A DNA stretch of 64,000 nt from Podarcis vaucheri (taxonomy: Eukaryota), in the NCBI GenBank assembly GCA_965113315.1, contig OZ220374.1, one strand, 5' to 3'. Positions 9,833-57,230 of the stretch are shown in pieces. Below the pieces are notes generated by a model. The model was not told the DNA's origin. It saw only the letters and a list, made by a program, of their open reading frames with translations, and made no database searches. Position numbers and translations under genes: made by a program. Each line of letters begins with the position of its first letter. The first letter of the stretch is position 1.

Positions 9833-9849
9833 CGGGGCTCGTGGGTCTC

Positions 9850-23230: not shown

Positions 23231-23588
23231 AAGGTAAAGGTACCCCTGCCCGAACGGGCCAGTCTTGACAGACTCTGGGGTTTGTGCGCCCATCTCACAT
23301 CTATAGGCCGGGGGCCAGCGCTGTCCGGAGACACTTCCGGGTCACGTGGCCAGCGTGACAAGCTGCATCTGGCGAGCCAGCGCAGCACACGGAACGCCGT
23401 TTACCTTCCCGCTGGTAAGCGGTACCTATTTATCTACTTGCACCCGGGGGTGCTTTCGAACTGCTAGGTTGGCAGGCGCTGGGACCGAGCAGCGGGAGTG
23501 CACCCCGCCGCGGGGATTCGAACCGCCGACCTTTCGATCGGCAAGCCCTAGGCACTGAGGCTTTTACCCACAGCGCCACCCGCGTCCC
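23231..23588 (-). mobile_element. Full-length Sauria SINE
   Basis: Reverse-complement head GGGACGCGGGTGGCGCTGTGG, (ACCTTT)n tail, perfect 15-bp TSD TTGACTTGGAAATTA. Confidence 0.9.
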
Positions 23589-24651
23589 TTGACTTGGAAA
23601 TTAGTTCTGCAATATTCAGTAGAAATTACTTCCAGTAGAAATCTATTAGAATTGATGCCTTGAGGTCTAAGTTATGTTGATTTTTAAGAAGGTTTGTTGT
23701 GCACTGTTTTTGTTTTATTTAAAAAATCTAGACTATAGCGTAAGTGGTGTATAAGATAAAAACAAAATAAAGCACAAGTTCTAAAAACAGCATTTCAGCA
23801 AACTCTGAAAGCAATGAAATCATTTTTACACATTCTAAAAACAATATTACAATTTGTTCAAATATATGATTGCATATAGATATTTGGGGATCCCTTCTGT
23901 GAAGAGGTGTTCGGTTGTTTTGTACTCTTGGATGGTACTGAAACAGGCAATTTGCAGGTGTATGTTCCAGAGAGAAATGGGCTAGTAAATACTTCCATCC
24001 TGTTGACAATGCTATACTGAAATATATATTCAGAATTGTCAGGCAAAGTCATTTAAGTTCAAAATGCAAAGTTTTTTTGTGGCATACCTTTGAAATTCAT
24101 AGCTTCTGTGAGATGTGTTATAGGAAGCAACGTGATGGTGTGGGAAAGGCAAGCTTCTGTAGTTACTATATTCTGATTTACAAGGTTATGGTAACTTTAG
24201 TTCCAGGAGCTGAGAGTGTTCCAATGTGTTTTGGGGGGAAATTAAGTGGCTTTGTTTCTTTGTTTTAAAATCAAAGCTATCCATACAGCATCAAATTACT
24301 GAACTTTGTAACCATAAGTAGGGTAAATGAGTTGGAAACCGTTACAAAATTAACACGTTATGTGTGGAGTCTGGTAAAGCTCAGTCTGAAGATACAGAAA
24401 TTGATTCTTTGTGTTATAGAAACTAAGACAGGATACTTCTTGTAACAAACATATCAAACCCTTAACATACAGCTAGTCAAGCTCTGTAGTTCAGTTGCAT
24501 TCCTTTCTTCTTGGTCTCATTTGATCTGTGTTTCATTAATGCGCTCAGGATTACAGCTTAAAACCTTAGTTTCCTTAACTGCTGTATCCAAACCAAAAGA
24601 AACACTACCTTGAATAAATGGAGTAAAATGAGACCAGCTTTTACTTTAGAT

Positions 24652-32600: not shown

Positions 32601-34084
32601 CCATTGAATGCTTTCACCTTATGCAGCAGAGTCTTTAGAGCCAAGAAGTTCGTTGCTGAAAATTCAAAAGTAATGTGTCTTCAGTACTGAACTAAAATCT
32701 GTGATTCTGAATTATCTGTCTCTATTTTTTTTTAACTGGCAAATTATGGAATGGTCTTGATCAGGAAGAAAGGAACTCCATGTTGTCTTCTGCTATAGTA
32801 GATTTGACCAGGAAAGGAGAATGGATTCTCCATCATTGCAAGTAAAAATTGTCAAGTTTAAATGCAAAAATGACATTTCATTTAAAAGAATTAGTGTGCT
32901 GGTTTTTTCCACAAGATGAAATGAGATAAGTCTTCTTAGCACAAACATCTGTGAAGCAGAAATATAGTATTCACCATACACAACAGTTTCTTTGCAAGTG
33001 ATTTTTTTTCCCCTTTGGGATTGTTCTTGATTATTTATATTGGCTTCAGTTATTGCTTTTTTGTGATTTAATATTTAAGATATGTTTTGTTATAGCTGTA
33101 AAATGCAATACAAATAAGAAGCAGCAGCAGCCTGGGAACTGTGATAGAGAAATGTGATATAGCTATTCCCCTATGCATAGAGCTAAACACAGCTTCATTG
33201 GAAAGGCTGGGGAAGATCAGTGAAACCAGCATATGTTGTATGTTGCAGTGCAGCTGTTCATATTTGCCAACAGTGCTTTCTTTGTAAATTTCAAAGAGCT
33301 GATGTTTCCTGCTGAAGTGGGTTTCAGGGTACTGAACCAGGAGCATTGGTGAAAGGCTTGTGTGTTCCAACGTGTTTTTTTCTATAGCACTTTCAGTCAT
33401 GCTAAATGCTTGTTGCAGCAGCTGCCTCAGAAGGTTTAATAATGTGTTAATCCGATTTTGCAGGCGGCAAAGTCATGATAGGTACTTCATTTATTAAATT
33501 TGAATTATGAATAATTTCTTATGAAGCCTCTCTCCAGCCAAGTAGCGATCTTACGGCTGAACAGCAATTTGACCTCCCTAGTCTATGTCCATCATTGTAA
33601 CCCAGCCTTCTTCCACTTGATGACAGGCATTTTAGACTTAAAACTTCCAAAACCTCTTACCATTAGCTATGCCATTTATGGCTGATGAGAGTTGTAGTCC
33701 AAACATCTGAAGGACATTAGAGGAAGACAGCTCTATCCACCATACCACACTGTTATCCTAGTGCTTCAATCAAAATCCATGTTTGGGATAGATACTTGAC
33801 ATTTGTGCCACCCATCTTCTGTGTCGTAGGGTAAATTGTATAAATTGCAACGATGCAGCTAAAATTGTCTAACCTGAATGGCTACATGAAAAATAAAACT
33901 CAAGATATGCTTAGCATTGTCAAATTACATTTTGAAAGTCTTTATGTCTGCGTAGGCAGAAGTTTGATCACGGGGTGATTTTGCAGTAGACACACCAGTT
34001 GGCCAGCAAGGATTTGACTACTAATAGCAAGACTAGAGGCTCTTCTACTTAAATGCAGTTTTGCACTATGTATATGCAAATTAA

Positions 34085-34452
34085 GGGACGCGGGTGGCGC
34101 TGTGGGTAAAACCTCAGTGCCTAGGACTTGCCGATCGTATGGTTGGCGGTTCGAATCCCCGCGGCAGGGTGAGCTCCCGTCGTTCGGTCCCAGCTCCTGC
34201 CCACCTAGAGGTTCGAAAGCACCCTTAAGTGCAAGTAGATAAATAGGTACCGCTTTATAGTGGGAAGGTAAACGGCGTTTCCGTGTGCTGTTCTGGTGCT
34301 GGCTCGCCAGAGCAGCTTCGCCACGCTGGCCACGTGACCCGGAAGTGTCTCCGGACAGCGCTGGCCCCCGGCCTCTTAAGTGAGATGGGCGCACAACCCT
34401 AGAGTTGGACACGACTGGCCCGTACGGGCAGGGGTACCTTTACCTTTGCCTT
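34085..34452 (+). mobile_element. Full-length Sauria SINE
   Basis: GGGACGCGGGTGGCGCTGTGG head, GGTTCGAATCC B-box, ACCTTT tail, 13-bp TSD TATATGCAAATTA. Confidence 0.9.
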
Positions 34453-35315
34453 TATATGCAAATTATCCTAGTCTGTGGCACAGTGAGGTTCAGCAGACAA
34501 CTGGCTCTGACCCGCCATTATTTTGAACTAGAACCCTAGAGTTCTAGTAAAAAACAAAAAGTAGATCCTACAAGTCTGAAGTCTGCCCACGCCTGCTCTA
34601 CATAAAACATTTTTTTGCGAATTGCAGTTTCTCAACCCTTTAGCAATATGACCAGTCTGTTTTGGTGATACTTCACACACCTAACCGGGGCTGTATTTGT
34701 TTTCAAATATGGAGACACCCATGTATAAACATTGCTTACTAATCAAACATGTTTAGTCATCTGTCCAGTCTTTATTGCAAATGCCAATTGTTTCCATGGA
34801 GTCAACTGGCCAGTCTTATCAGCTTGGTGGGCACGGTTCTATTTCTTCCTTCCATTTTTTTTAATGGTTTGCAACATCACTCACAGTTACAATCAACTTT
34901 ACAGCCTTAAATTTTGTGTCCCCTTGTTCTTCAGAGAGTAACTTGATGAGGTAATAAGCCAAACTAAACACACAAACCACAGTGGAGCAGTGTGGACATA
35001 CTTTTTAGAATCATTGTGGTAGCAATGAGTTTCCAGCTCATCACGTATTTATAGAGAAATTTTGTCTTTGCCAGTGAGGCTATGAATAGCCTGAGAAGAA
35101 CCCAATCGTGTTTTTTAAAATTGAAGATCCAGTATGAACCCTGGACTTTCAGTGCAGTCTGTAAACTGTTATTGAGTGGCATTGCCTTCTGTTTACCACT
35201 ATTAGCAATATACAAAATGAGCTATGCATTCTTAATGCCTTTTTTCTTCTTCTATCCTGCAGCTTAGGTGGTGATCAATACAGTTCTCTCTGAGGAGCCA
35301 GAAAGCAGGCAGCTC

Positions 35316-35396
35316 ATGACTTCTGATCAGGACCCTAAAGTTGTGGCTGAACCGCAGGTGCAGCAAGTACAAGAAGTTAAAGATAGTTCTCATCTA
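35316..35396 (+). CDS. LARP4B: LARP4B canonical first coding exon (exon 35263-35396), MTSDQDPKVVAEPQVQQVQEVKDSSHL
   Basis: Polypyrimidine tract + AG at 35261-35262, ATG at 35316, donor CTA|GTAAGT, phase 0. Matches the recalled human N-terminus MTSDQDAKVVAEPQ...KDSAHL. Confidence 0.93.
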
Positions 35397-36696: not shown

Positions 36697-37986
36697 ACTG
36701 AATTAATTCAGCAAGGGCAGCTACTGGTGCAGAGAGGTGCTGGATGATATTTTATTGTTGCACAAGCCTTGTTGAGGACCTTTGCAAATGGCTTGGACAG
36801 CAGTGGGATTCTTTATTAACAATATCCCACCAAAAGCGTGGTGAAGAATATCTTGTGGTAATGGCAGATATTGGCTCAGCCAGGGGAATTAATATAGCCT
36901 GATTATCTTTCTCAGAACAAGCATCACAGTTCTCTTGGTTTAGGAAAACATAGGCTGGCCAAAAAATCTTTAGAGATCTGAACCTGCACATCAGGAAATA
37001 AGGATTCACACTCCCACCCATCTGTCAAATTTGGCCAATTGGGCAGGGCCAGATAAAAATCTGATCCCCAGAGCCAAAAATGTTCCTCATCCCTTCTGAA
37101 ACTTGTGGACGTTCTCTCTTTAGCCAGACTGAGGCAAAACCTGTTGGTTTTCCTAGTCAAGGTATGCCACAAGGAATGGTTTTTCTTTTGTGGACTTTCT
37201 CCTTCTCATGCCCATGTTTTGTGGGCAGAACTGAATTGTTTCGGACACATTCCCCCCCACCTGCCCCAGTTTGGGGCATCACATCGAGAAATTGAGGTGA
37301 ATCGTGTTAGTGCAAATGGTCATGTGAGAATAGTATGTAAATTACATGTTGGAAGTGGGCAAGCAGGATGGTCTTCATTGTTGTCTTCTCTCTCCTGCCC
37401 CGCAAAAAAATTAAAAAGCAAGGAATTACTGGAGCGGTTTTAATTTGCAGTACCTTTAGAATGAACTCTGAGGCTTTGAACTGTACTTTGGATAGAAAAA
37501 TCCTGTTGAGTCCCTAACAGAGTTTCCTTGTTCTATCAATTCCTAATTACAGCAAATTAACACGCAGTATTACAGTAGGTTAGGATGCATATGCACCCTT
37601 TTTTGTTATTCAGTTCAATATGGGAGTGGCTGCTCTGACAAGGCATTCATACATTTAGAAGGAGAGACAGACAGCTAAAGTTCTGAACACTTTCATTGTT
37701 TGGGAGATGAAAAAAATGAAGAAAATCCTCCAAATACCTAGTACAAGCCAGAAAAATAGATAGCTGAAAGTCACATTGTTTAGCATAATGCCGGCTTTAC
37801 ATAGAGGCATTTTAGGAACTGGGCTTTGGATTTTGAGTGGCAATAGCATATGAACCCCCTGCACTGTTTAAACAGTGCTATTTTTGGCATCTGGGTGTTG
37901 GCTTGTCTGCCCAGCAGCCTTGAAGTGAAGTGGGTATATGCAGTAAAGAGCTCACAGTTCCGCGACTTGTAAAAGGCAACATAAAA

Positions 37987-40900
37987 ATGGGTTGCTGTTT
38001 CAGTAAAGAACTCAACAGCAAGAATGAGAAGATGAGTCTTTTGCAAAAATCAACTGAAGAGGAGACGTTGGAAAACGGGATAAGTAAAACTTTAACTTCC
38101 ATTTTGGAGACCATGGAAAGAAAGGAGCTGCATGTAATCCAAGAGGCAGTTTCTGGAACACCTGCTATTCATAATAATTGCGTAGAGCCAGTTAAATATC
38201 CTTCAGGCCATTGTGCGGGGATCGCTGAAGGTGGCCACAACCCCAGTAGATCTTTTAATCTTTATCCACATAATGCAAGAAAGGTCTTGAATGGTTATGG
38301 CAGTTTACAAGAGTGCAGACGAATGGAAGATATGGATGGTGCTGAAAATCTTCCAGAAAGTAGCAGTAGTAATGTTCAATGTGTGAATAATGCAGGCAGC
38401 TACCATATTAATAGCAATAATGAAACAGGATCTACTGTAGCTGGAAAGCCATGCCGTTCATTTGAAAGTACTTCTTCATGTGTGCCGGTGGCTGTAAGCC
38501 AAGGAAGCATCTTCCCGAAAGCCTTAAGTACATGTGGAATAAAAGGCAAGCCAGTTATGGGTGAGTGCTTATTAGTGCAGGATGAAGTAGATTCTGTTAA
38601 AAGTAATTGTAGTGCAGTAGGTTCAGGTAGAGCAGACAGAGAGACAGCAGCTTCAAGCTTTGCATATCTTGATATTGACAGGCCCCGTATAAGTATCAGA
38701 GATGAATTCTACAGTATTTGTATAGTTGATGATGATCTGAGAATGGATCTAGAAGAAGGGCAAGTTATTGTGCACGGAGAGACTGCTTTAGAGGTAGAAA
38801 GTTCAGCTGTTCAGGAGATGTACAGTATGACATGGCCTGGGGAAAGTGGGAAGGAATTGTTAGTCCCGAAGAAGCCGGTTCAGGTGCCTGTTGACTTCAG
38901 TGCTCTGAAAGATGAATCTCCCAGTATAATAAAGGATAGTTTACTGATGCCAAAAAGTGAAATGGGGGTAAAAGCTCCAGTTGGCTTAGTGAATGGGGAT
39001 CACAGGTTAAATACTGACAGAATAGCAGCAGATGTGTTAAGGGCACAAGCACATGGCGAAGATCTTACTAAAAATAGAACCCAGGAAATGAATATGGTAG
39101 ATAGTAGTAGAATCTTTGTGAATGAATCACTTGGTGAAAACAATAATTCTCCAACACCTGTGCATTTGGAGAAAGGCATGAAATATTCTCTGCAATTAAA
39201 AAGCAGGACTCATGCATGGACTTCCTTTTTCAATAGTGAGAACAAATGTGTCACTGAAGGTGTAAAGTCTGAATCTAATGAAAATCAAAATACCGAAGGT
39301 GAAAACTCTAAACAGTTGTTGGGAAGCCTGAAGTTTTCATCAGAGTTTGAGGACACAACTGGTCATTTCCTCTCTGTAAGTCAAAATAACACAAAAAACC
39401 AAAGTCAGATGAATAGGCCAAACTTTACAGGAAGCACAAATGAATTTTGGAGAGTATCTGCCCGCAATGATAAGAAAATCCCTAACTTTTCTGAACAGTT
39501 TAATCCAGAGCTACTCCTGAAATATGAAGATGATTCTGATCTTGGAACATTCTGCTCCCATGGGGATCTGAGAGAAAGCACCATTAAAACACTTCCAACA
39601 TCAGAGAGTGTGGCTTTTGAAGCGGAAATACCCCATGTTTCAGAGCTTACCAGTTATGAAGACGGCAGCTTTATAAGGGCTGCTCATCAAAACCTGTCTC
39701 AAATAGATAACATACCTTCAGAGATGAGTGATTTGACAGAAGGATCATGGGGAAGCGAAGAGACATTAACTTTTTCTAAACCTCTTAATGTAAATGTAAA
39801 TGAATATGAAAGAATCCAAAATGAAAATTGCTTGGAAGTTCAAGTTCCACACAACCTCTCTAAAAAGGATGGCAAAACAAATGACTATTCCAGTTCACTT
39901 AACGAAGATAACAGCTGCTGTGTCTCTTTAGCACATTCTGAAGTGAGTGAGATGGATTTGAATGATGAACAATGCAAGCTATGGAACAAATGTACATTCC
40001 ATAGACTGGAAGATCAGCTGAGTGCAGGGACTGACCCTCACAAATTAATAGCAACTGCAGAAGAGCCTGTAAATGGGTTGAAATGGGAAACACACCATGA
40101 AAGGAAAACACATAGTGAAATAGAAACCAAGGCAGATTCTGAAAATTTCACTGTTCAAGATGACTGTATGTTAAATGGCAATAATGATCTAATGCAAAAA
40201 CTTAGAGTATCTTCAAATATGCAAGAGAGGCCTTTAGTTCTGGAGGAGTCTTTAAGTATCCTGCAGATTGATAAAGCTAATAGTCAGCTTGAAACAGAGA
40301 GACTTCCTGCATCAGTTGATGAAAGTGATGCTAGAAATGTAAAAATAGAAACTAGTCACACTGAGACATCGACCAGATCAAGGGGAGGGAAATCAGGATT
40401 CTACGGAAACAGCTCTTTACCCAAACAGAGTATAATGGAAACCATGTGCCCTCTTAGGCCTTTAAATTCTGAAGTTTCAATTCCCTGTGCAGATATATTA
40501 ACAGAAAATGCAAAGGACTCTGCTCCCCAAAACGGCCAGCAGAAACTGAACATTGAGGTGGAATGTGCTTCCAGATCAGATGCCAAAGACTCTCTGACTT
40601 GTACTGATGCAGTTGGGATTTGTATTGACCCCAAGCAGGTAGACAAATATGCTGCTACTCCTTCGTACGAAATACCTCTGGCCTCTGTTAACGATCAAGA
40701 ATGTGACCAAGGCAATGCAAAGCATGTATTGGATCTGATGGAAGATATATTAAAGGAATCTGATAACACACACAAAATGGATATGGGCGATTCCCAAGGT
40801 GATCCGCTTTGTCCATCTGCTCCACTAAGTGGTTTGTTTTCATCTGCCAAGTTTACAGATGATCAGGAATATCTGATGGGATATTTGTGGATTAATTCAT

Positions 40901-41061
40901 CTTTTAACAAAACGGATAGCTCATGCAGTGCTAGTGAGGCGCTCCAAAATGAAACTGGCGATGTGACCGTTCCTTCTTTTGAAATGGGAGGATACCCTTA
41001 CCAGTTGCTAGTACAACAAAACAGTGATATCTGGGGATGGCAAGATAGAGATGAAGGATAT
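37987..41061 (+). CDS. LARP4B: Putative alternative giant first coding exon of LARP4B (1,025 aa, MGCCFSK..., S/E/N/D-rich, probably disordered)
   Basis: Uninterrupted 3.1 kb ORF in an AT-rich intron. Strong Kozak aaaATGG, upstream in-frame TGA at 37921. Donor TAT|GTAAGT after exactly 1,025 codons, phase 0, compatible with the PAM2w exon at 43975. Confidence 0.8.
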
Positions 41062-42239
41062 GTAAGTATTTCACTATCATAATTTGATTCATCAGGCACT
41101 TTTGAAAAGAAGTTGCTGTAATCCAAGGTGAAGATTTTGATTTGATGTATGATATTCTAAAACTCCAGCAGTGTTTCCATTTGTTTGAGTTAAGCCACTG
41201 TCAAATGCTAAAATGGAGGCATACATAACAGCACATCTTGGTACCTGTGTTGTGGCAGGCATAGACATCTCTTTTGTTGCCTCTCACCCATCCATAGCCT
41301 CTGAAGGTTGCCACAAAGTTGATATTTTACAACTTACTGTAACGTTCTCCCTAAAACAGATTGGAAAAATGCTTGGGTTAAATTTTAATACATTATTGAT
41401 GAGCCGATTTTTATCATTGCTCAGAAGTTTGAACTGGGAAGTAAATAATTGTGTCCCTACACCTGCACTCCTATCTGAGAGCTGAAGGACGAGGATTTGA
41501 AAAAGCATCTTGCTACCATTACGTTGTAAAATTGCTTTTAGCCATTTGTGAGCGGTAGCTTTGTAACGGTGGTCGGGGTCTAATTGAGGGCACGTAAGTG
41601 AGCCTTACTCGAACACAGGAGGACTTACTTCTGAGTAGGCTATGTATGGGATTGCAGTGCACATGTCTAGTCTGGGCAATTCCCTGCTCCCCTAGCACTG
41701 TGTGTAGAGAATTACTGTAATGCTAACTTGGTTGCTGTAACTGCTTTGAACTTGGGCTGTTGCAGGATTTGCTGCCATGTTTCCATGTTGAATAGAGGGG
41801 TGCATTTCATTCATTTTTTTCCAGAGTTTCTTGGGGCACACCTAACTGTTGGAAGCTGGACAGCTCCAGCGCTCTTTCTCTTAATCCTTTTTTGGATTTG
41901 TGTTTTACTTTTCGTTACTGCCTCTGGCAGTGGCAGCAGAGCTCCTCAGTGGCAGCCAGCCAGCAATATTATGTCCCTGGAACATTGCTAAGCAAGAGGT
42001 AGCATTGTTTGATTGAGGCTGGGAAGACTATGGGGGGAATACTCCCAAGGCTCAAATCCTATGCCCTGCTAGGATTAAGCTCCATCAAACACAGTGGGAT
42101 GTGCTTCTGAGTAGACATGTGCAAGATTGCATTGAAACTGAGGAGGGGAGTCTTCATCATCACAAACTTCAGCTGGCTATCAAGGCCAGCCAAAACTCTG
42201 ATGGCCCCTGCCCTTTCCTAATGTAAAGGAATACATTTC

Positions 42240-43974: not shown

Positions 43975-44122
43975 GAGTCGGCCAAGGTTTCTGAACTAAA
44001 TCCTAATGCAAAAGTATGGGGGAATCATATGTTACATGTGGAAGCAAGCGGGGCTAATGATGGCGGCGTGAGCAAAACCTGGGAAGAAATAGCAGATCAT
44101 CCACCAGATTCCTGCAAAGAAG
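43975..44122 (+). CDS. LARP4B: LARP4B exon with variant PAM2 (PAM2w) motif ESAKVSELNPNAKVW
   Basis: ctag|GAG ... AAG|gtacga, 148 nt, phase 0 to 1. SELNPNAxVW is the LARP4-family PABP-MLLE binding motif. Confidence 0.95.
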
Positions 44123-44224
44123 GTACGATTCTAGCTGAGTGTGCTGGTCCTCTGAGCCTTTTCTTTCTAATTTAAAGCAGATAAAGAATTTTTTGGTTTG
44201 TGACTCCTGCAACTTTTTCTGCAG

Positions 44225-44386
44225 GGTTGGAGGCCAACGGTGATGGTGACAAAAAGCACCAGAATGAATCGTTAACAGAACTGCAAGAACCATCAGTGAC
44301 AGCTCCACTGTCAGACCAGACAGATATGAACCCTTTGGCTCTAGATCATTCAGAGTATGAATCTATACACGAAAACACTCAGACAG
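44225..44386 (+). CDS. LARP4B: LARP4B exon (LEANGDGDKKHQNES...SEYESIHENTQT)
   Basis: gcag|GG ... CAG|gtaag, 162 nt, phase 1 to 1; similar to recalled human DANGDGD...DMNALAL..SEY. Confidence 0.92.
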
Positions 44387-45653
44387 GTAAGAAAGAGGAG
44401 GCTTCCTTGTATGTTTTTAAAATGGTTTTCCAACTTACAAAATGACCCCCAGTGTTTATCCTAAATATGTCTTTGACAGGAACTTATAAATTACAAGCTA
44501 CTGAAGAAATTTACCTGGGCAACACTGAATTATAGGCATTGCTACAGAAATGATTAAACAGTAACAATAGTTGCTTATAGGAATCCTTGATGCATAGTCT
44601 GAAATAAGTAGTGCCTATTAATGTGACAATTTTACCAGGACATTTGCATGTATTTATATGTGGGGCTCAGTCTGCTTCATTTAGGACAAACCACTGTTTG
44701 CCCCCGGGCTTGTGACTACAGTACATTTAAAGAAATACCAGATTGATCATATGTACAATATTTCAAATGTTCAAACTTGCCTCCGTCATTAAAAAGCAAT
44801 CTAAACTTTGAAGTCTCAACAGCCCAGACAATGCTAGGAACTTTGAACCTTCAATGTCTTGGGTAGTGAATATATTTACTAGATGAACTGAGTATTTTAT
44901 AGGATCACAGGATGTAGTGTTGACATGTTATCTTGGAAGACTAAGTTGTATAATGAAAAGTGCCTACAGTGCATAATTCAGGAGTAGTGCTCTCTAGTTC
45001 CCACCATCCCTGACCATCGGCCATGTTTATTTTAATTTTTTTTAAAATGAAGATTGTATTCTTTGGCAAAGGCAAGAAAAGCTGAATGATTCACATTATG
45101 CACATTTTATTTGCTTAATTCAGTAATTCTGCTTTTGCTAGTTACAGAGAAAGACAAACTTTGCAGGGCATTACATCTGCTCACTGTGCAACCCACACAT
45201 GACATTGCCTACATGGTATCAATCCTCCACAATCTCAGGGCCAGAAACTTGCTTTGCAGACTTCTGCAGCTAGTGTCAAATACTGTGTTTTCAGGGTGTG
45301 AACATAGGATTTCAACCAATGCACAGCTCTACCATTTTTATACAGTATATAGGCTGAGGATAGATACCACCTGCCTGGGGTACTGTCTGTTTTAAACTAA
45401 TGTTATTGGGGAAACCTAATAACTCATCTAAGGAAGTCACATTGCACAAGCATTTTTCTGTTGTGCAAACAGGCAGATATCATTGGATGTTGTTCAGTGC
45501 AGCCTAACACTATAATTCTTGTGTCATTTCTTCTGAGTCCAGAAAAGGAACTTTTCAAAACATTATATAATTCTCTTATCCATCTTAATCAATTTGGAGC
45601 TCCCTTCTGCTTTTTTCCAACTGATAATCTAAGTTTTTACTTAATAGACTAAA

Positions 45654-45654
45654 T

Positions 45655-45695
<41 letters not shown>
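45654..45695. repeat. (AAC)n microsatellite at the L2 tail
   Basis: About 14 AAC units. Confidence 0.9.
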
Positions 45696-45696
<1 letters not shown>

Positions 45697-46043
45697 TTAT
45701 TATTTATACCCCGCCCATCTGGCTGGGTTTCCCCAGGCACTCTGGGCGGCTTCCAACAAAACACTAAAATACAATAACCTATTAAACATTAAAAGCTTCC
45801 CTAAACAGGGCTGCCTTTAGATGTCTTCTAAAAGTTTGGTAGTTATTTTTCTCTTTGATACCTGGTGGGAGGGCATTCCACAGGGCGGGTGCCACTACCG
45901 AGAAGGCCCTCTGCCTGGTTCCCTGAAACTTGGCTTCTTGCAGCGAGGGAACTGCCAGAAGCCCTCGGAGCTGGACCTCAGTGTCCGGGCAGAACGATGG
46001 AGGTTGAGACGCTCCTTCAGGTATACTGGACCGAGGCCGTTTA
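45696..46043 (-). mobile_element. Relatively intact L2 LINE 3' end
   Basis: Reverse complement encodes GPVYLKERL...RAFSVVAPALWNALP; 3' end shared with 4288-4545 and ~14150-14190. Confidence 0.8.
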
Positions 46044-46821
46044 GCAAAAAGAATTTAGCTCGTGTCTGCTGCAACGTCTGATGGCAAGAATTTCCACTGT
46101 AGTACCAAACACAATCCTGGCTGTTAAAATTATAATGAATAATGCAACTTTCTTACATAAGAGTTTCTTACATAAGAGTTTCATGTTGGTCTTTGTACTT
46201 TGAAGCTAACAAATGAATTTTTTTTCATATTATATCATTATATCATGGTGCTGTGCACATATTTCAAACTGCTTTCTCGGCAGTAATATATTTCAAGTTT
46301 TAAAGATGACGTTTGAGATACTTGTCTGCATTGAGTGTGTAAAGGGTGTACATAACAGAGCAGAAAAAATAAATACTAGAAGCCTTCTTGATACCTTCCA
46401 GATATATAAAAATTTATTCCTGTTCAAATATTTACATATTTTACATCACCCTTATTTCTTAAAAGCTATTGCAACTGGAAAGGAATCCTAACTAATTTGT
46501 CAGTTGTTTATGTATTGATGGTAATATAAAATGATTGTTGCTTGGCTTTTCAATGGAGCCAACCTTTTCTAATGAGATGGGGTGGGTAGACTGTGGATGC
46601 AAGCTTATGTGTGTCTGTGCTCCACCAAAGTTTCTGCTGAGTCCGGATATTTAGGATCATGTGCAAGATACTCTTTGTGTCATGAGTTGGTATGAAGGGT
46701 ACTTTATTTAACCTCTATTGCCATTGCAAATAAGGTGACCTTTGACACTTGAAGGAAGCTACTTTTTATGAAGGCTTGGTTTCTCCCCCAACTTTGTAAA
46801 ACTCATGTCTTCTGTTTCTAG

Positions 46822-46903
46822 AAGGTAAAGAACAGCTGCAGTCAGAAGGTCAGGAAGACTTGCGAGAAGTACTGAAAAAAACACTGGAGTTCTGTTTATC
46901 TAG
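46822..46903 (+). CDS. LARP4B: LARP4B exon, start of La motif (QEDLREVLKKTLEFCLSR)
   Basis: ctag|AAG ... TAG|gtaagc, 82 nt, phase 1 to 2. NAGNAG acceptor allows an alternative start at 46825. Confidence 0.95.
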
Positions 46904-47703
46904 GTAAGCATAACATGTATTCAGTAGTGACCACTCATGCTGTATTTATTTAAAGCATTTTTGTTGGTAGCAAGAAAAATAGAGATATATAGAATTCTTA
47001 GATGCCAATATCCAGGTTTGGGAAAAATGTTATTGCAAAATATGCAGCAAAGCAAAGCAAAATCTGCAGCATAGAGAGAGACCACTCATTTGATAAGTTT
47101 AAAAAGGTTGATTTATATACTCACAAATGATAGGTCCATGTGCTTTTCCATGCAGCATTCAGTAAAGGTTCCACAGGCATTAAAACGTGGCTTAGTTATA
47201 CTGGTGAAAGTTCCTAAATTATTGGTGTAGGAATTTAAGAGAGACCTGTTAGAGTGATGTGGTCTGCGCTTGGAGCAAGCAGCTCAGATCTCCCAAATTG
47301 AGCTTCTCAAGTAGACTGTGAGGTACAGCGATAAGGCTTGATTACATTCCTCCCAGGTTGGAGGGGAGCGACATAGCTAAGCCTGCCAGGCCAGCTTACT
47401 CTGTGGCATCAAACCCTTCATGCATTAATTAGACTTAGGCATGTTGGTTATCCCACATTTTTATCCCACTCTTCATACCAGAAAAGAAAAAGGCTTCCAG
47501 AGCAGTTTACAGATATTTGCCTTTTAGGATGATAGGTTAGGTCATGTGTGAGGAACCTTTGCCCTTTCAGATGCTGCTGAGTTACAACTCCCGATCAGCT
47601 CTAGTGATCATGTTGATCAATAAGCAAGTCAAATGCAACTTTTTCGCTTGTGTAAAGATAAAGAAAGGAGTTTTATAATGAAGACTCTGCTTTCCTTCAA
47701 CAG

Positions 47704-47840
47704 AGAGAATCTTGCCAGTGACATGTACCTTATATCTCAGATGGACAGTGATCAGTATGTGCCAATAATGACAGTAGCAAACCTTGATCACGTCAAGAAG
47801 CTGAGCACTGATATGGATTTGATTGTTGAAGTGCTGCGAT
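47704..47840 (+). CDS. LARP4B: LARP4B exon, La motif ([20 protein letters not shown]...LIVEVLR)
   Basis: acag|A ... GAT|gtaagt, 137 nt, phase 2 to 1. Confidence 0.97.
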
Positions 47841-48740
47841 GTAAGTAATTGACAAAGCACCTATTTTTGACTTGAAGATGAATAGTGAGTTTTTGTTCTG
47901 TGAGGTGCATAGCATTGGGGGAGGGTTGAAGCCAGCGGGTGAGTGCAACATTTAGAAAACTGTACTTAAATGACAATAAACCTGTCTTGGCAGTAAATTC
48001 ATGCTTGCAGCGAGAGACCTGCCATTTAATCTTCTGTTTTATACAATAGATTTATTGGAGAATGCCCCTCTGTCAAACTGCTCGACTTGGGTATCCTAAT
48101 GATACTGCATTGTTGCAGTTAAACGTATATTCAGTATGTAGCTTGTTAGCGTCAGCCACTACAGACTTTTCTAAGTGGAAGTTCTCCAAGGTTGGTTTCA
48201 AAAGATACCTAGCAGGTTTCTGCTCCAGCACACCATTTGCAATTTTTATTTAGCAGTTTACTAATTAAACCTGTCAAGCATAAATTTTTTGTATCGTGGC
48301 TAAAGTATTTGAAAGTAATTACCACTGGTGTGAGGCAGTTTGGAATCTGATAAGTGAAGCGCTTGATGGTCACTCCTGATGATTTGTTTAGTGTAGTACC
48401 AAAGAGTAGTGTTGGAATGTACACTCTTTCATTTCAAAGTGGGGAAAAGGGCAATACAAGGTGGACTTTCTAACAGAATAAGACTGGTAGGAGTGGGTTC
48501 CCCCCTCTGAAAGGCTTCACTAAGAGGTGTGGTGAACACTCCAGGATCTTTCCTAAAGTAAGTTGTTTGCCTGGGAGACTTGACAGGCATGTTCCACGTT
48601 TGTACACATTTATTTACAAACCGGAGATGAATAAGGTAACAGATCTTACTCTAGTCCTACAAAACTGCAGTGTGTGCAAAACAAAGCCTTGCTTAACTGG
48701 TTGAATTCAAAGTAACTGTGTTGTATGTGTCTTCCCCTAG

Positions 48741-48844
48741 CATTGCCTTTAGTCCAAGTGGACGAGAAGGGTGAAAAAGTCAGGCCAAACCAGAATCGCT
48801 GCATTGTGATTTTACGTGAAGTACCTGAATCTACTCCAATTGAA
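48741..48844 (+). CDS. LARP4B: LARP4B exon, La motif end and RRM start ([34 protein letters not shown])
   Basis: ctag|CA ... GAA|gtaagt, 104 nt, phase 1 to 0. Confidence 0.97.
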
Positions 48845-49123
48845 GTAAGTTCTGTATACAGCAGTCAAACAATTCGCAACATGCTTTAAAAAAATCCCAC
48901 CCACCCTATACCTTTGCCATGGTGCTGGGTGGCTACAGCTTTAATTGTGATTCTCTCTCTTGGCGATCACTTGTGGCCAAGTAAGCTTTTCTTCCATATA
49001 ATATTTTCCAAGTAAGATTTACTTCCATATAATTGTGCATTCATGATATCACTCACAACTTTATAAAGCATACAAGGAAAACAATCCCACACTCAACCAA
49101 TAACTAAATACCTGTTTAAAAGA

Positions 49124-49245
49124 CTATGGCAGACCAACACGGCTACCTATCTGTGTATCTGAAGAAGTGTGCATGCACACGAAAGCTCATACCAAGAACT
49201 AACTTAGTTGGTCTTTAAGGTGCTACTGGAAGGAATTTTTTTATT
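49124..49245. mobile_element. Penelope-like element terminal fragment
   Basis: 'tatctgaagaagtgtgcatgcacacgaaagctcatacc...gttggtctttaaggtgctactgga' flanked by a 12-bp direct repeat CTGTTTAAAAGA. Family assignment from memory. Confidence 0.65.
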
Positions 49246-50006
49246 CTGTTTAAAAGAAAATATTGAATTGCCGCTGAGATGCCATTTATACCTTGTCAGA
49301 AAGAGGTTTCTGGAGCCTTTTAGACAGCGAGTGCCTCTCTACATGCTTCCACCATAAAGTTAAGGCTGCTCCTGGAAGACAGATTCCAAATCAATAAATG
49401 TAGAGCAGTGGGCAACATTTTGAGTGAGGTGTTCTAACTAGCTCATTGACAGCAGAAGAGATCGAGGAGGTTGAGTAAATGCTCTTTGAAGAGAAAGAGA
49501 TGTTTTAAGAAATCAAAAAAGTAATATTGGTGTTCATGCAGAGTGATATTAACAGGAAAACACAATTTCCTGAGTCATAAAGTTTGACTTGGGAACGTCA
49601 ATAAGGGTGTATCTGCTGTTAATCTGTTAATTGAAGGTTAACACGGTATGTCTTTGTATTTACAGTTCAGTGAGTAGTATCTGAACTGTACTGGAATAGA
49701 CCCAATTGAAATCAATGGACTTTAAATTAGTGATAGGTGTGACTTAGTCAGGTGCCACCCTGAAATTGTTTAGGCACCAACATCAAACCTTTAGGTGGCA
49801 GCCTTTGCATAGTTGAAAAGAAATCAGGTCCCTGGAATGATGGGACAGTGTCAGTAGCCTGCTCCATAGCCCTTTCTTGTTGAAATTAAGGATAGTCAGT
49901 GATACTTTTTGCCATCAGTTCTAATGAGGCCTTGACTTGCTTGGTCCTAAATGAACCTTCTGTTGTACTTGTCAGTGAACCCTCTTTCCCACCAATCTTT
50001 CCTTAG

Positions 50007-50117
50007 GAGGTCGAAGCACTCTTCAAGGGAGATAACTTGCCTAGGTTCATCAACTGTGAGTTTGCCTATAATGACAACTGGTTTATTACATTTGAGTCTG
50101 AAGCAGATGCACAGCAG
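50007..50117 (+). CDS. LARP4B: LARP4B exon, RRM ([37 protein letters not shown])
   Basis: ttag|GAG ... CAG|gtaagc, 111 nt, phase 0. Confidence 0.97.
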
Positions 50118-50785
50118 GTAAGCTCTCACTTTTTTGTTGCACATATTTAGTTTGTGTCAATTATCAGTTTTGGAGATTAATTACTGTGACACTCTTGACT
50201 GAGGTGGTGTGAACAGACCTCCACAAACAAAGTTGGTCCATAATACAATGTTCATGTAAGAAATGGCAGGAAGACATCATATAGTTGCACAGAACAGCAG
50301 CCTTCATAATTCAGAGAAATTCATTGTTGTCTAGTCATGGTTTCCATAATTAAGTCTAGAATACATGTACTTCTTGGAAATTTTAAATCCTACTAAAAGG
50401 AGTGATTCAGCCAACTGCTGTTGTGATTATGATAAGTCTTAATTGTGCCTTTCTTGTCTGGGCTGCTCTCAAAAGCTGGTTTAGACCCTAGAGTGGAATT
50501 TTTGAAATGGAGTAAGTAGCTTCCTGCTCCCATCTTTACTGTGATTTTAGTACCACATATGATCATTGCCAAGCAGGGTTAAAATGAAACCTGATAATGC
50601 CTCTGACCATATGCTGAGGACCTGTCTGTAATCCAGTATAAACCTGAATTGGACCCAAGTATTCTTAAATAGGGAAGAACTGATATTGTTTGAGTTAATA
50701 TCTGTGTGTGCATAATTATATACTTTTTCTTGTTAATTTGCTATATCTGCTGCCTTTCACAAAAACATATTTTTCACTCTTAAAG

Positions 50786-50839
50786 GCTTATAGATACCTT
50801 AGAGAAGAAGTGAAAACCTTCCAAGGAAAACCAATTAAG
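50786..50839 (+). CDS. LARP4B: LARP4B exon, RRM (AYRYLREEVKTFQGKPIK)
   Basis: aaag|GCT ... AAG|gtaaat, 54 nt, phase 0. Confidence 0.96.
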
Positions 50840-50939
50840 GTAAATACGTTTTGTTTTTAGTGTTCACTGAAATACTTCTGAGAGTGGTCGTCTTTCTCTT
50901 AGACTGATTCTTCTAAGATCATGCTCTTCTGTCTTTTAG

Positions 50940-51146
50940 GCAAGAATAAAAGCAAAGGCTATAGCTATAAACACATTTTTGCCAAAGAATGGATACAGAC
51001 CTCTGGACATGAACATCTACACACAGCGTTATACAACATCATTTTACATACCTCCAGTATACAGCCCCCAACAGCAGTTTCCACTGTACAGCTTAATTGC
51101 CCCACAGACGTGGTCAACAACACATAGCTATCTTGATCCATCACTG
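50940..51146 (+). CDS. LARP4B: LARP4B exon (ARIKAKAIAINTFLPKNGYRP...HSYLDPSL)
   Basis: ttag|GCA ... CTG|gtaagc, 207 nt, phase 0. Confidence 0.96.
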
Positions 51147-51651
51147 GTAAGCACTTCAGAATCATTCCTTTGTTGCTTTTTTAAATGTTCATGCTGTTAC
51201 TTAGTCTTGAATATAATCGGGGCATACTAGATTCAGTTTATAGCTCCATAATAACTGGTGTACTTCCTGAATCTGTTTTACGTACTCTTACTTCTCAACC
51301 CATATATTAGCATTACACCATGTTCCTCATTTTTAGATTATTTTGTAGCAGCAAGTTGGAGTAGCTAAAGACAATGAGAAAGAAGGCCTCTTGAATGTTT
51401 TTAATTCTGTTAAATCCCCTTCAGTGTAAATTGAAGTGATGATAGGAACTAAGGACTTGATTATTTATCCTCATAATCTTAAGACCAGGTGTTACGCTCA
51501 AGCTACATATTAAGTAAAATTGCATGGCAGAATCGCCCTTGCATTTCAGACTTCCAAACTACGTGCAGTGCTTAAGAGGTTTTGACCTCAGCCTCTCCCT
51601 TACATGCGAACTTTCTGCAGACACTAAATGTTTTTTTATGTAAAAACATTT

Positions 51652-52040
51652 AGTGCTGGTTTTGACCTATGAAGCCTTAAACAGCTCAGGGCCACAATTA
51701 TGTCAAGGACCGCAAACCTGGACCTTGCAATCATCAGCTGAGGCCCTTTTTTCATGCGCCCCCTCCATAAGAGGTCCAGAGGATGGCAACACAAGACCGG
51801 GCCTTTTCTGTGGTGGCTCCCCATCTGTAGGATGTTCTCCTCACCTGGTGCCTTCATTACATATCTTTAGGTGCCAGGCAAAAACATTACTCCATAACCA
51901 GACCATTTAAATGTGTGTTTGGCAGGGTGGTTATTGCTTTGCTTTTGTTCTATTTAGTATTTTGTGTTCTCATTTTGTATTTTTATGTTGCGAACCACCC
52001 TGTAATCTTCTGAGGAAGAATGGCATACTAAATAAATTAA
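51652..52040 (+). mobile_element. L2 LINE 3' fragment
   Basis: VLVLTYEALNSSGP and 'gccttttctgtggtggctcccc' motifs. Confidence 0.7.
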
Positions 52041-52214
52041 CTAACTTACCTGCTTCACCACTGTGAGGACTGGATCCTGGTCTAGCTGGGCTATACACCT
52101 GGGCCAGCAAGTGCTGATCTTAATGTAAAAATCAGTCCTGTGAGGTCATTTCAAGAACTCTTGAGAGTCTCTTAAATCTACAGCTGTGTAACTTGCAGTA
52201 CTTCTGTTCCATAG

Positions 52215-52321
52215 GTAACACCGTTTCCAAATACTGGATTTATCAATGGTTTTACATCTCCTACTTTCAAGCCTACTACTTCTCCACTGACTTCACTCAG
52301 GCAGTATACACCTAGAAGCAG
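52215..52321 (+). CDS. LARP4B: LARP4B exon (VTPFPNTGFINGFTSP...RQYTPRSR) with GC donor
   Basis: atag|GTA ... CAG|gcaagt, 107 nt, phase 0 to 2; frame is restored by the next exon. Confidence 0.92.
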
Positions 52322-52483
52322 GCAAGTTCTGGAAATAAGTTTTCATCTTTTGCTCTGTTAATTTATATCTGTCGTGGGAATTATTGGAATGGCATTTGCC
52401 AGGAGTATGTATCACTTTGGGATGTTCACTTCTCTTGAATACTATGGCCTGTCCTCACTTTATAATTGTATAAAGAACCATTC

Positions 52484-52700
52484 CGGTGGTGCCTCTGGTT
52501 ACAAACTTAATTCGTTCTGGAGGTCCGTTCTTAACCTGAAACTGTTCTTAACCTGAGGCACCACTTTAGCTAATGGGGCCTACCACGCCACCTGCACACA
52601 ATTTCTGTTCTCATCCTGAGGTAAAGTTCTTAACCTGAGGTACTACTTCCGGGTTAGCAGAGTCTGTAACCCGAGGTGTTTGTAACCCGAGGTACCACTG
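52484..52700 (+). mobile_element. Tigger-like MITE, family B
   Basis: Homologous to 19944-20169; right TIR GGTACCACTG|TA. Confidence 0.8.
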
Positions 52701-53129
52701 TAATTGGTTTTTTATTTTTTTTAAAAACCAGACCTTAATTACAACCCTGGGTTATGTTAATGTTACAGTAGCAATTTGAACAATTGATTAAGGGAAGTGG
52801 CCTACATGACCTCCCCAAATGGAAATCTATGCTGCTAGGAGGAATAATAATTTTACAAGAATTGCAGGCGTTGTGTCTTCATGAAGTGCTGTGGTCACAG
52901 ATCTCAATGTGATGAGACAGGCTTCTTCTAAAAGAGACATTGTTGGCTTCTAGAGAACTGAACTACATGTATGTGAAGCAGTGGGAGGAGAGGGGATGAT
53001 GGCTGGGAGGAGAATAGAGTCAGTGCTGGAGCTGCAAGGTATTTAATATCCCCAAGGGCAGGTACGTATAGAATGACCACTCTCTCTTGACTGTGGTTAA
53101 AAGATGAGAACGGACCATAAAATCACATA

Positions 53130-53352
53130 TAGTGGTACCTTGGGTTAAGAACTTAATTCGTTCCAGAGGTCCATTCTTAACCTGAGACTGTTCTTAACCT
53201 GAGACACTTTAGCTAATGGGGCCTCCTGCTGCTGCCGCGCCGCCGGAGCACGATTTCTCTTCTCATCCTGAAGCAAAGTTCTTAACCCAAGGTACTATTT
53301 CTGGGTTAGCGGAGTCTGTAACCTGAAGCGTCTGTAACCCGAGGTACCACTG
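53130..53352 (+). mobile_element. Tigger-like MITE, family B
   Basis: Homologous to 19944-20169; TA TSD. Confidence 0.85.
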
Positions 53353-54259
53353 TACCTCTACCCCAGAGTAAATTCCACCCTCCCATCTTATCCACTGGTT
53401 CAGGCTAACCAGACAGAGAGTTAACCACAGTTAAGATTGATGCCAAGATCTCCGTCTTGGTTAAGGTGGGCGGAGCGCACATTCTCATGATGGAAGCCAT
53501 TGCATCTACAGAAGCACCAGGCCTTTCTGGACAACAATTAAGGATTTATTATGTTTTCAGAATGTATTAGAAAAATTATATAGAAAGGTTTATTGTTTTG
53601 TGTTCATTCAAATGTAAGATAAAACATATGCAAAGGGACTTGACAGGAAGTCAAAGTTGAAGAACAGATTTTGGAAGATAAAAGGGAAAAAATATTTACT
53701 TTCATTGTTATCATTTTCTGTGCGGTGTGGGTGTCTGCACATATGTGTGTTGTTGTATGCAATGTTTGGGAGGAAATAAGACGGTAAATAACAAATAACA
53801 AACTAAATATCGATGTATGTAATTTTTATTTCTTAATTATATTTAGTGGTAGTATGGCTGTATTGTTTTTTGAAACATAAAACCATTCAATAAAAATTAT
53901 AAAAAAAGAAGCAGCACCAGGCCTTTCCATATAAATAGACTTTGTAGAAGTAAATGTATCTTCTTTGTAGAAGATAGATTTTGAGAAGAAGACAGATGTT
54001 ACAACTTGTCCTGATAAAATTACAGACCTTTGTCATGTTATGTAATAAAGTTTCCTTTGACGGCTCTAAAAGATCACGCCACATTTTCCCATGAGTGTTG
54101 GGTGGATTCCCGCCACAGCCTGAACAATTTATGTATTCGGTAAACATTTGTCTTATGCTATAAAAGGAATAGCCTTTAGAAAGTTCTTCAGCGCGGTTCT
54201 GGAAGTTGTCTGCAGATTTTGCACGATGGTTTAAATTATGTCTTTTGTTTCTCCCCCAG

Positions 54260-54511
54260 AAATCCCAGCAAATCACATCTACGGCATACAATACCCAGTG
54301 CGGACAGAGGGCCAGGACTTTTAGAGAGCCCTACAATATTCAATTTTTCTGCTGACCGCTTAATCAACGGTGTCAGGAGCCCGCAAACAAGGCAACCAGG
54401 GCAAAACAGGACACGGATGCAAAGTACGACAAGTTATACCAAGCGTGAAGTGGGCAGTGGGCGAGTAGAGCCTGCTACTTTAGACTCATCCCCAAACTTA
54501 GGTAGAGGAAG
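54260..54511 (+). CDS. LARP4B: LARP4B exon (NPSKSHLRHTIPSADRGPGLLESP...SSPNLGRGR)
   Basis: ccag|A ... AAG|gtgagt, 252 nt, phase 2 to 2. Confidence 0.96.
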
Positions 54512-56929
54512 GTGAGTACTGGAACATTTATTAAGCACTTTTGTTGACTAAGTGCTGCTCAGAGCTCCATTAAATCATGTGTTTCCACCATGTGGGAGTA
54601 ATGAAAAGTGGAAGATGAAACCCCAGGTGAGGAGGGAGATTGAATTGCGGGGAAAGAGAAAAGAAAATAACTTTTAAAAGCATTTTTTAAAGGGTTTTTG
54701 TATAAATGAGAGGCTGGGAAAGAAATTCCACAGATGAGGTGCGTCTAAGAAAACGGGCGTGCAAGAACTGAGAAGATGCTTACTAACAAAAAGATTAGAA
54801 TCTGTATTGACACAAAAAAATTGGCAGACTGAAGTGAGTGGGAAGATTTCTGATGGCTACATAAAGAGGACTGCAACAGTTTGGAATGCTTCTAGGGCAA
54901 TGAGTCCAAGAGAGGGAAATAATTGCTTGTAGAAAGAGGCATTAACATGGTGACAAGTCGAAGTGAAGAAGTACCGAACTAAAAAAAGAAACATCTGGTT
55001 GGGAAAGTGTTTTGGTGTTAAACTAGGGTCCATATCAAAATATGGCAAACCATATTCAATCTAATAACATATTTCTGTTGCTTTAGTTGTTATATAACTA
55101 TTTACAATTTGGAAGTTGCAATTTAGCTTACTTATTTATCCTGGCTGCCTTCGGTTATGGAGTCCAAGACACTGCTCATGTGGCTCCCATGCAGGTACTG
55201 GTTAGGCTGAGACCTGCTTAATTCTACCAAGGTGGTAATCTCATTAGCCTTCAGACCTTGCCCTGGGATCCTAGAACCTTTGTTGCTTGGTGCTCTGTGA
55301 TTTGACAGGGAGAAATTGTGTTCAGAATGAAGACCGCAAGCTGGCTGCATCTGGTCTTTTCAGGAACACAAATACTTTATTTGGTGGGGGTCAGTTGATA
55401 TTGCACGGGCTAGGGACAAGAATTTTAAACTCAGTAAGGAAGATCAGCCAAGGAAGAACTGGAGGGCACAAAGGACATCTTAATAATCTGCCAAACATTC
55501 CTTTTGGTTTCTAAGCCTTCAACAGAGCTTTCTCTGCCAGAGTTGTGAAACTGGAAATGTGGGGGTGGGGTGGGGGTGGTGTTTTTGTAAGAGATGCTTT
55601 TTAGGAAGCCCAATTCCTTGCCCGAAATTTATTTCTGTGCTGCTTGAATGGTCTGAATAGGCATGGCTTTTTGTGTGTGCCATCATTGCAATGCAAATGC
55701 TTATTGGACCTTGCACTTCATTAGCATTGATATGTGGTGGTTTTCAACTTTTCCTCTTGTTTGTTTCCAATAGTAGTGCTCTGGACACCTTTTTATTTTA
55801 CTGCAAATCTATGAGATATTACACGTACACGTACACATGCACAGATAATTGATTTTTTGTCATTCTTCCCCTAACCCGTCATCTGAGTGCTAAGAGCAGA
55901 TTGATAGATTTCATAAGCCTTTGTAGGTATCGGTTGTCAAGCTACTGTCTTACAGTCTAGCCCTTGTGCCTGGTGTTACTGTGCTAGTTCTTATTTGACA
56001 CTGCAGGCTCTTTATTCTATGAATGCAGTCATTTGTTGCTACCATTTGTAATACCAAAACTGCAGAGAGAAATGGAATCGAATGGAGTGGCTGGAAGCCT
56101 GAGCAGAACTCAGCACTTCAGTCTTTTTTGTCCTTTATAAAAATCTCTTACTAATCAGCCTTATGTTCATTGCCTTTATTTGTTACTTAGAAAACATAAG
56201 AGAATTGTGAGACAATTGCTTACAAAGGATTTAGGTCTCCTGTAAACTTGCAAGAAACCCCAAATTCCTAGTGCTGTAGATATTTATACAGGTACCAAGC
56301 CATGGTATGGATAGTAGAACAATGTAGCTTGCCTTGGACAAGGAGCGCTAACATTATGCAAGAGAACGAAAGCAACTGCATGATGTCCACGACCATAGTG
56401 TCTCATACCAAATGTAAACGAACTGTGAAAAAGACACTATGAATAAAAAATGGAGACGTTATTTGTACTTTTCCTTGTTTATATGTTTGTTTTGTAACAC
56501 AAGGAAATCTTGAATAAAAACTTCTTTTTTACAAAAAAAAAACAAAAAAACAGGAGCAAGAGCACCATGTACTTGGCTGTGGTATAGTCAGCCCTTAATC
56601 ATTTGAGACAAAAGCACCGAAAGACATGGGAAAAAATAGTGGTGGGGAATTTGTTAGTTTGTTTATATTCCCTCCTTTTTCCCTGATGGGGCTCCCCAGG
56701 CAACTTTCAGATAAAAGCAAACCGAAAAAAGCTAACTGCCATTATCCCAGAATGTATTATTTATCAACATATTTTTCATTGACAAAAATTGGAAAATGAA
56801 ACGGTAATGCAATCTTTGCAGCTTAATAGTTGAAATGCAGGTTATTTAATGTGTGTCAGGATTTGATTGTATTCTCTGAAGAACAAGACGGCTATACAGG
56901 TGAATGACTTCTATCAGCTTCCTATGCTT

Positions 56930-57230
56930 TAAAGTTCTAGCCAGCACCTGTACTTTGGAACTCCCCGCCACTTGAGATCAAGCAGGCGCCTTCACTGTAC
57001 TCTTTTTTGCGCCTGCTAGAAACATTATTGTTTAAACAAGCCAACTAGATGCTTAGAAAGTTGAGGTAACTTTAATCTGTTTTAGTATTTTTAACTTTGC
57101 ATATTTCAAAGTAATGGCTGTGAATTTTTTCTCAACCTTCTTGTTTTATCTGTTTGTAAACCACTTTGAGCTTGTTGGTTTTTTTTACAATCAAGTGGTG
57201 TAGAAATTTTAGGAATTATATAAATAAATA
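56930..57230 (+). mobile_element. L2 LINE 3' fragment
   Basis: APVLWNSP...RQAPSLYSFLRLLETLLF-like translation, followed by an AT-rich tail. Confidence 0.55.

Follow-up and report, generated by a model that had tools for sequence, protein, structure and literature searches.

A candidate LAMTOR1-like lipid anchor encoded by a probable alternative first coding exon of LARP4B

LARP4B has been studied as a soluble cytoplasmic factor that binds poly(A)-binding protein (PABP), RACK1 and mRNA. Endosomal and lysosomal adaptors on which mRNA hitchhikes include Upa1 of Ustilago maydis, which carries PAM2 and PAM2L motifs and a FYVE domain, ANXA11 and the FERRY complex. Dual-acylated anchors of the SH4 type, found in Src-family kinases and G-alpha-i/o, start with Met-Gly and have a neighbouring Cys and Ser or Thr at position 6. 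The first 39 residues of LAMTOR1/p18 contain an acidic dileucine together with palmitoylation and myristoylation sites, and they target fusions to the lysosome surface (PMC7039192). The 40-residue sequence of the LAMTOR1/p18 lysosome tag is printed in PMC12878585, which describes the tag in the same terms. We analyzed a 64,000-nucleotide stretch of the Podarcis vaucheri genome (GCA_965113315.1, contig OZ220374.1; hereafter, the window), in which an earlier note had proposed that an exon of LARP4B starts with a LAMTOR1-like anchor. In our reading, to which we assign a probability of about 0.55, translation of a LAMTOR1-like anchored long isoform of LARP4B starts at positions 37987-38043, in an alternative first coding exon of deep conservation.

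The N-terminal motif and its conservation

The 57 bases at 37987-38043 (+) translate as MGCCFSKELNSKNEKMSLL. The start codon lies in a strong context (aaaATGg). The nearest upstream in-frame stop is a TGA at 37921-37923, and there are no in-frame ATGs between this stop and the start. The following features were assigned by translation, column conservation in 96 distinct vertebrate N-termini and motif counts.

37987-38043 (+): predicted coding start of the long isoform
within 37987-38043 (+): Met1-Gly2, candidate myristoylation site; Cys3-Cys4, candidate palmitoylation sites; Ser6-Lys7, as preferred by N-myristoyltransferase
38026-38043 (+): acidic dileucine E14xxxL18L19 (E14-K-M-S-L18-L19)

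The residues and coordinates given in the earlier note for Gly2, Cys3, Cys4, Ser6, Lys7 and E14-L18L19 were reproduced by translation. N-myristoyltransferase prefers a small uncharged residue at position 3, Ser, Thr, Ala or Gly at position 6 and a basic residue at position 7, and C3, S6 and K7 agree with this preference. The dileucine matches the consensus [DE]XXXL[LI], is conserved, and lies in a flexible segment, as residues 1-30 were predicted to be non-helical with a predicted local distance difference test score (pLDDT) of 31-36.

A profile built from 19 amniote sequences was searched against 1.84 billion representatives, which yielded 85 matches, and names were recovered for 30 of them. 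Further models (sturgeon, paddlefish, Ascaphus, and dozens of birds) were added by a word-based search. The 96 distinct N-termini, which are phylogenetically related rows, were taken from teleosts, gar, sturgeon, coelacanth, amphibians, reptiles, birds and mammals. C3 and C4, adjoining the myristoyl-Gly as is typical of palmitoylated Cys residues, were present in all N-termini retrieved, the rows having been chosen by the string MGCC. Column conservation was as follows.

M, G, C and C: 100%, by construction; F5: 99%
S6: 95%, the others being A, T and G; the motif count in 89 N-termini adds one N and one R
K7: 94% (plus R); E8: 97%; L9: 83%
next seven columns (linker): 17-38%
E, L and L of the dileucine: 99, 99 and 94%; columns after it: 27-69%

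The [DE]xxxL[LI] signal was found in 87 of the 89 N-termini with its acidic residue at position 14-17; this residue is at 16 in most vertebrate LARP4B long forms and at 14 in this lizard. The earlier note had made its proposal dependent on conservation in orthologous exons, and both MGCC and ExxxLL are indeed kept in these exons from fish to mammals. Because the acylation residues (94-100%) and the dileucine (99/99/94%) are conserved far above the linker between them (17-38%), the motif is more than a chance occurrence. Judged from these patterns, the N-terminus likely serves as a functional acyl anchor, and the long LARP4B isoform is probably tethered to membranes via its fatty acids.

The giant exon within the LARP4B locus

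Mapping of squamate long models identified the window as a lacertid lizard LARP4B locus, in which the mapped exons span 43975-63335 (+). These exons are 85-97% identical to squamate LARP4B-type models. The features relevant to the joining of the new exon are given below; PAM2w is the PABP-binding motif of LARP4B.

35263-35396 (+): canonical first coding exon, with the acceptor at 35263, the ATG at 35316, 27 codons (MTSDQDPKVV...), a GTAAGT donor and phase 0
37987-41061 (+): the giant exon, a putative alternative first coding exon of LARP4B with 1025 codons and a phase-0 end, assigned from its open reading frame, the lack of any Pfam family and LARP4B-isoform homologues
41062-41067 (+): 5' splice site GTAAGT closing the giant exon (TAT/GTAAGT), read from the sequence; conservation ends exactly here
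43975-44122 (+): PAM2w exon, beginning ESAKVSELNPNAKVWG, with a pyrimidine-rich acceptor and in phase 0 with the giant exon
47666-47839 (+): La-domain exon of LARP4B (Pfam PF05383, E 4.5e-15)

The La domain and PAM2w occur in one gene at this locus, which is orthologous to named LARP4B. The giant exon lies in the intron between the canonical ATG exon, 2.6 kb upstream, and the PAM2w exon, and its use would swap the 27 canonical residues for 1025. Its assignment to LARP4B as an alternative exon, made in the earlier note, held: the exon would be spliced in frame just before the PAM2w motif (SELNPNAKVWG, 43975 onward), which is five residues past the junction. In the models shown, which range from teleosts to mammals, the WxW motif at the end of the giant exon and the PAM2w core are separated by 11-18 residues, most often by 16-18, and this near-constancy indicates that the junction and its phase are conserved.

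The product of the giant exon is 96% identical to an uncharacterised protein of Podarcis muralis. Stand-alone models from Podarcis, Rhineura, Naja, turtles and crocodile end in unrelated short tails from the conserved donor onward, and tails of this kind right after a donor are the pattern of intron read-through. Seven teleost MGCC proteins annotated as 'uncharacterized' were scanned, and each proved to have a La domain. Models joining the giant exon to LARP4B were also produced by pipelines other than Gnomon (Albula, Menidia, Anableps, Pleurodeles [KAJ record] and Hirundo). Logan-derived spliced transcripts were sought among the junction-spanning matches, and the 10 that were looked up were all genome-annotation models. 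On the comparative evidence, the giant exon belongs to LARP4B with high likelihood. The Podarcis stand-alone model ends in 19 residues that map to 41169-41225 (+), which would be a short extra exon in the following intron; this tail is not conserved in other species and probably reflects either an error of gene prediction or a minor isoform that terminates there.

Homologues with the exon are named as LARP4B isoforms in chicken, cuckoo, platypus, Tasmanian devil, elephant seal, hippopotamus, coelacanth, axolotl, gar, zebrafish (~1835 amino acids) and catfish, and several teleosts are among the named profile matches. The same name is given in opossum, naked mole-rat, takin, Pleurodeles, Xenopus laevis (larp4b.S), ruff, meerkat, Myotis and many more birds, and sturgeon, paddlefish and Ascaphus are represented by unnamed or 'uncharacterized' La-domain models. 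An exact MGCC start was found in 116 of 126 long models (at least 1200 amino acids), and six more have non-conserved upstream extensions. In none of the 126 does the giant exon occur together with the canonical MTSDQ start; as far as gene models go, the two exons are mutually exclusive. The same architecture recurs from teleosts to mammals, comprising the MGCC start, a disordered acidic region, FYSIC, YPY...WxW, PAM2w and the La module. The range of these models places the origin of the exon no later than that of the bony vertebrates; cartilaginous fishes were absent from the matches, though the search method does not exclude them.

In many acanthomorph teleosts, genes listed as 'uncharacterized protein LOC...' contain MGCC, FYSIC, WxW, a PAM2-like LNP[DEN]A.VW and a La domain (models P0079, P0083, P0085, P0090, P0093, P0095 and P0103). 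These genes may be a larp4b paralogue whose main or only product is the anchored form.

The open reading frame of 1025 codons is far beyond chance in a genome of about 40% GC, and a chance reading frame was rejected on its length and conservation. A Pfam scan of the giant exon returned no families. The product is acidic (net charge -69) and contains 12% Ser. AlphaFold2, run with an alignment, gave a mean pLDDT of 28.4 and predicted disorder, with only three helices, at residues 31-55, 343-355 and 660-668. The first of these is the longest and the sole one nearing a pLDDT of 50, and the other two are short. Five conserved islands (residues 1-45, which cover the anchor and the first helix, and residues 241-248, 881-896, 961-968 and 1003-1020) stand in a background of approximately 10-30% identity between this lizard and non-squamates. 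The picture suggested by the models is that of a long disordered arm with short docking motifs. Its internal features are as follows.

38077-38151 (+): longest predicted helix, residues 31-55 (ISKTL.SIL...), directly after the anchor, from secondary-structure prediction; conserved in tetrapods in the alignment
38084-38089 (+): candidate internal 5' splice site A/GTAAAA, phase 1, inside codon 33, from the sequence and a Crotalus tigris model; a lead only
38707-38730 (+): FYSIC.VD motif, residues 241-248, with invariant columns F241, Y242, S243, I244, C245 and D248; present in most fish models
40627-40674 (+): DPxQVDKYAATPSYEI motif, residues 881-896, from alignment conservation
40867-40890 (+): EYLMGYLW motif, residues 961-968, from alignment conservation
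40993-41046 (+): YPYQLL...IWGWQD motif, residues 1003-1020, the conserved WxW-containing end ahead of the PAM2w core

FYSIC.VD, which is flanked by acidic residues, is invariant from fish to mammals. At its core it resembles both an LC3-interacting region ([FWY]xx[ILV]) and the F-Y-S core of phosphorylated motifs of the type named after two phenylalanines in an acidic tract (phospho-FFAT). The YPYQLL...IWGWQD motif and the PAM2w core LNPNAKVW (43975-44020, +) form a composite unique to the long isoform. Tryptophan motifs beside PAM2 recall the silencing domain of GW182, and the composite could alter the engagement of PAM2w with PABP or bring in further factors.

The Crotalus tigris LARP4B X2 model (P0037, 829 amino acids) exits the giant exon at the point homologous to 38084-38089, and all that it retains of this exon is the anchor, one section from the middle and, ahead of PAM2w, the YPY..WGW end. 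This hints that the internal donor could give short anchored isoforms. The near-invariant I-S-K codons, which overlap the candidate donor, may carry a double constraint.

Proposed mechanism and alternative readings

In the mechanism that we propose, Met1 would be removed and Gly2 then N-myristoylated co-translationally, for which Ser6 and Lys7 suit N-myristoyltransferase. Cys3 and Cys4 would be S-palmitoylated at membranes, resulting in a stable hold on the cytosolic leaflet. Adaptor protein (AP) complexes would read the acidic dileucine, 12-17 residues further along, and sort the protein to endolysosomal membranes. Since the combination of signals and their spacing match residues 1-39 of LAMTOR1/p18, which are sufficient for lysosomes, the long isoform would sit at endolysosomal or at least post-Golgi membranes. 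There, PAM2w, which binds PABP, and the La module, which binds RNA, would be carried on a flexible tether of about 1000 residues.

The steps of this mechanism differ in strength. That the membrane is endolysosomal rather than another falls slightly below an even chance, and that the long isoform holds messenger ribonucleoproteins (mRNPs) or polysomes there is doubtful, although endolysosomal mRNA tethering is a plausible inference from the motifs. Rather unlikely, by our estimate, is the widest version, a bony-vertebrate tether of mRNA to an organelle, in which a myristoylated and doubly palmitoylated LARP4B of 1700-1900 amino acids, fixed to late endosomes or lysosomes by its LAMTOR1-like signal, would keep PABP-bound mRNAs or polysomes there to be transported or translated locally. 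In that version, FYSIC and the YPY...WxW motif beside PAM2w would be further docking motifs of the arm.

Several points weigh against an anchored endolysosomal isoform. Proteins with a dual-acylated MGC start are often found on the plasma membrane or the Golgi, and the action of a dileucine signal depends on its context. Sequence homology to LAMTOR1 is absent, and a literature search found no paper linking LARP4B to lysosomes or acylation. The cross-species support consists entirely of predicted gene models, mostly from one pipeline, and some annotations (Podarcis, Rhineura, turtles and crocodile) give the exon as a stand-alone protein of ~1050 amino acids. The 5' end of the exon is undefined, with possible acceptors (cccAG/CAG) at 37913-37917 (+), and an out-of-frame upstream reading frame of three codons (ATG CAG TAA) is located at 37938-37946 (+). 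No CpG island was found near the giant exon, where, around 36.5-38.5 kb, the observed/expected CpG ratio is 0.13-0.39. As read from the sequence, splicing of the canonical ATG exon to the acceptor at 37913-37914 would lead into a stop within three codons; thus, the long form must either have a promoter of its own or leave that exon out.

A strong CpG island is present at 9251-11000 (GC 0.58-0.73, observed/expected 0.77-0.98), which is probably the main LARP4B promoter with non-coding exon 1. Smaller CpG-rich spots were observed at 23251-23750 and 34001-34500.

The same anchor residues would serve equally if the protein were held at the plasma membrane, Golgi or recycling endosomes, in the manner of the Src-family and G-alpha anchors, and the dileucine were used only for endocytic cycling, in which case the isoform might control mRNA locally at the cortex or synapse or sequester LARP4B from the cytosolic pool. 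Myristoylated and palmitoylated N-termini are established to reach the plasma membrane or Golgi by default, and the sequence after the dileucine varies (KS.EEE in tetrapods, PPLHDGL in teleosts), so that extra sorting information is not uniform. Against this stands the near-invariant acidic dileucine, whose distance from Gly2 is almost that in the lysosome-sufficient LAMTOR1 tag, and we regard such a location, the main alternative, as unlikely. A different objection concerns the gene itself. Stand-alone proteins of 945-1149 amino acids (Podarcis, Rhineura, Naja, turtles and Crocodylus) are on record in Ensembl/UniProt and in one NCBI model, as would be expected if the giant exon were a separate gene nested in LARP4B intron 1, encoding a lipid-anchored disordered protein of ~1050 amino acids, and the fusions were prediction artefacts. 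But the unrelated tails directly past the conserved donor bear the signature of intron read-through, the phase and the WxW-PAM2w distance are conserved from fish to mammals, all seven scanned teleost MGCC proteins have a La domain, and independent pipelines join the parts. A nested gene is thus very improbable.

Marginally more improbable still is that the exon is coding but the motif is not an anchor, because another start codon is used, the protein is produced in negligible amounts or an overlapping nucleotide-level element is conserved. Eleven models have upstream in-frame extensions, and the small upstream reading frame and the overlap of the near-invariant ISK codons with the possible internal donor could be taken in the same sense. 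These extensions are not conserved in sequence, however, and the window has no in-frame upstream ATG. The substitutions at position 6 are mostly those accepted by N-myristoyltransferase (A, T, G and N), plus one disfavoured R, and the retention of M-G-C-C-F-S-K-E at the protein level for over 400 million years is difficult to account for in another way.

The anchored long isoform of LARP4B is accordingly the reading we retain. A literature search found no paper on a long LARP4B isoform or an alternative first exon, nor the string MGCCFSKE, and the isoform is known solely as unremarked predicted records. Our verdict is that the long LARP4B isoform, with its predicted lipid anchor, is very probably real, and that it is ancient and undescribed. 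If this is true, LARP4B has an anchored form that exceeds the canonical protein more than twofold in length and is shared by fishes and mammals, and some of its biology takes place on membranes and has been overlooked. Made simply by choice of the first coding exon, this form would also be a further vertebrate adaptor linking mRNPs to endolysosomes, where few are known (ANXA11, FERRY and fungal Upa1). The isoform is predicted in the standard models zebrafish, Xenopus, chicken and opossum, and the other conserved short motifs of the disordered arm would provide handles for finding partners.

Comparison with LAMTOR1 and other anchored or mRNA-binding systems

We compared the exon start with the LAMTOR1/p18 tag. 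Both have MGCC, an aromatic residue at position 5, S6 and E8, followed by E-x-x-x-L-L; an MGCC start with an acidic dileucine within approximately 25 residues is the LAMTOR1-type layout. By our own count in the sequence printed in PMC12878585, the acidic residue of the LAMTOR1 dileucine is at 17, compared to 14-17 in the LARP4B long forms. Beyond this signal, no relationship was detected: there was no Pfam LAMTOR match, no protein of LAMTOR1 length (161 amino acids) among the 85 profile matches, only a chance match (E 5.1) in a PDB sequence search with residues 1-60, and no usable match in an ESM Atlas search with residues 1-48. Membership of the LAMTOR1 family was rejected on the Pfam, PDB and profile results. 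As homology is absent, the resemblance is one of mechanism and signal layout and not of family; the layout pointed out in the earlier note equals that of the published tag. The two proteins also differ in what the anchor carries, which is the Ragulator scaffold in LAMTOR1 and, in the predicted isoform, a protein of ~1700 amino acids with an RNA-binding module.

Canonical LARP4B (~720-740 amino acids), with PAM2w, the La module and binding to PABP and RACK1, is encoded by the same gene and the same exons from 43975 onward. It differs in starting from a 27-codon exon, whereas the long form would start from the 1025-codon exon with a lipid anchor and extra conserved motifs. SH4-type anchors share the Met-Gly/Cys/Ser6 layout with the long form, but lack the conserved acidic dileucine and are mainly located at the plasma membrane. 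Upa1, ANXA11 and FERRY resemble the proposed isoform in tying a membrane-binding module to a PABP- or RNA-binding module, and in Upa1 this module is likewise of the PAM2 type. The giant exon has no FYVE, annexin or Rab-effector domain, in line with the empty Pfam scan. Unlike in these adaptors, attachment in LARP4B would be through covalent lipid, and the tether would be made by the choice of the first coding exon.

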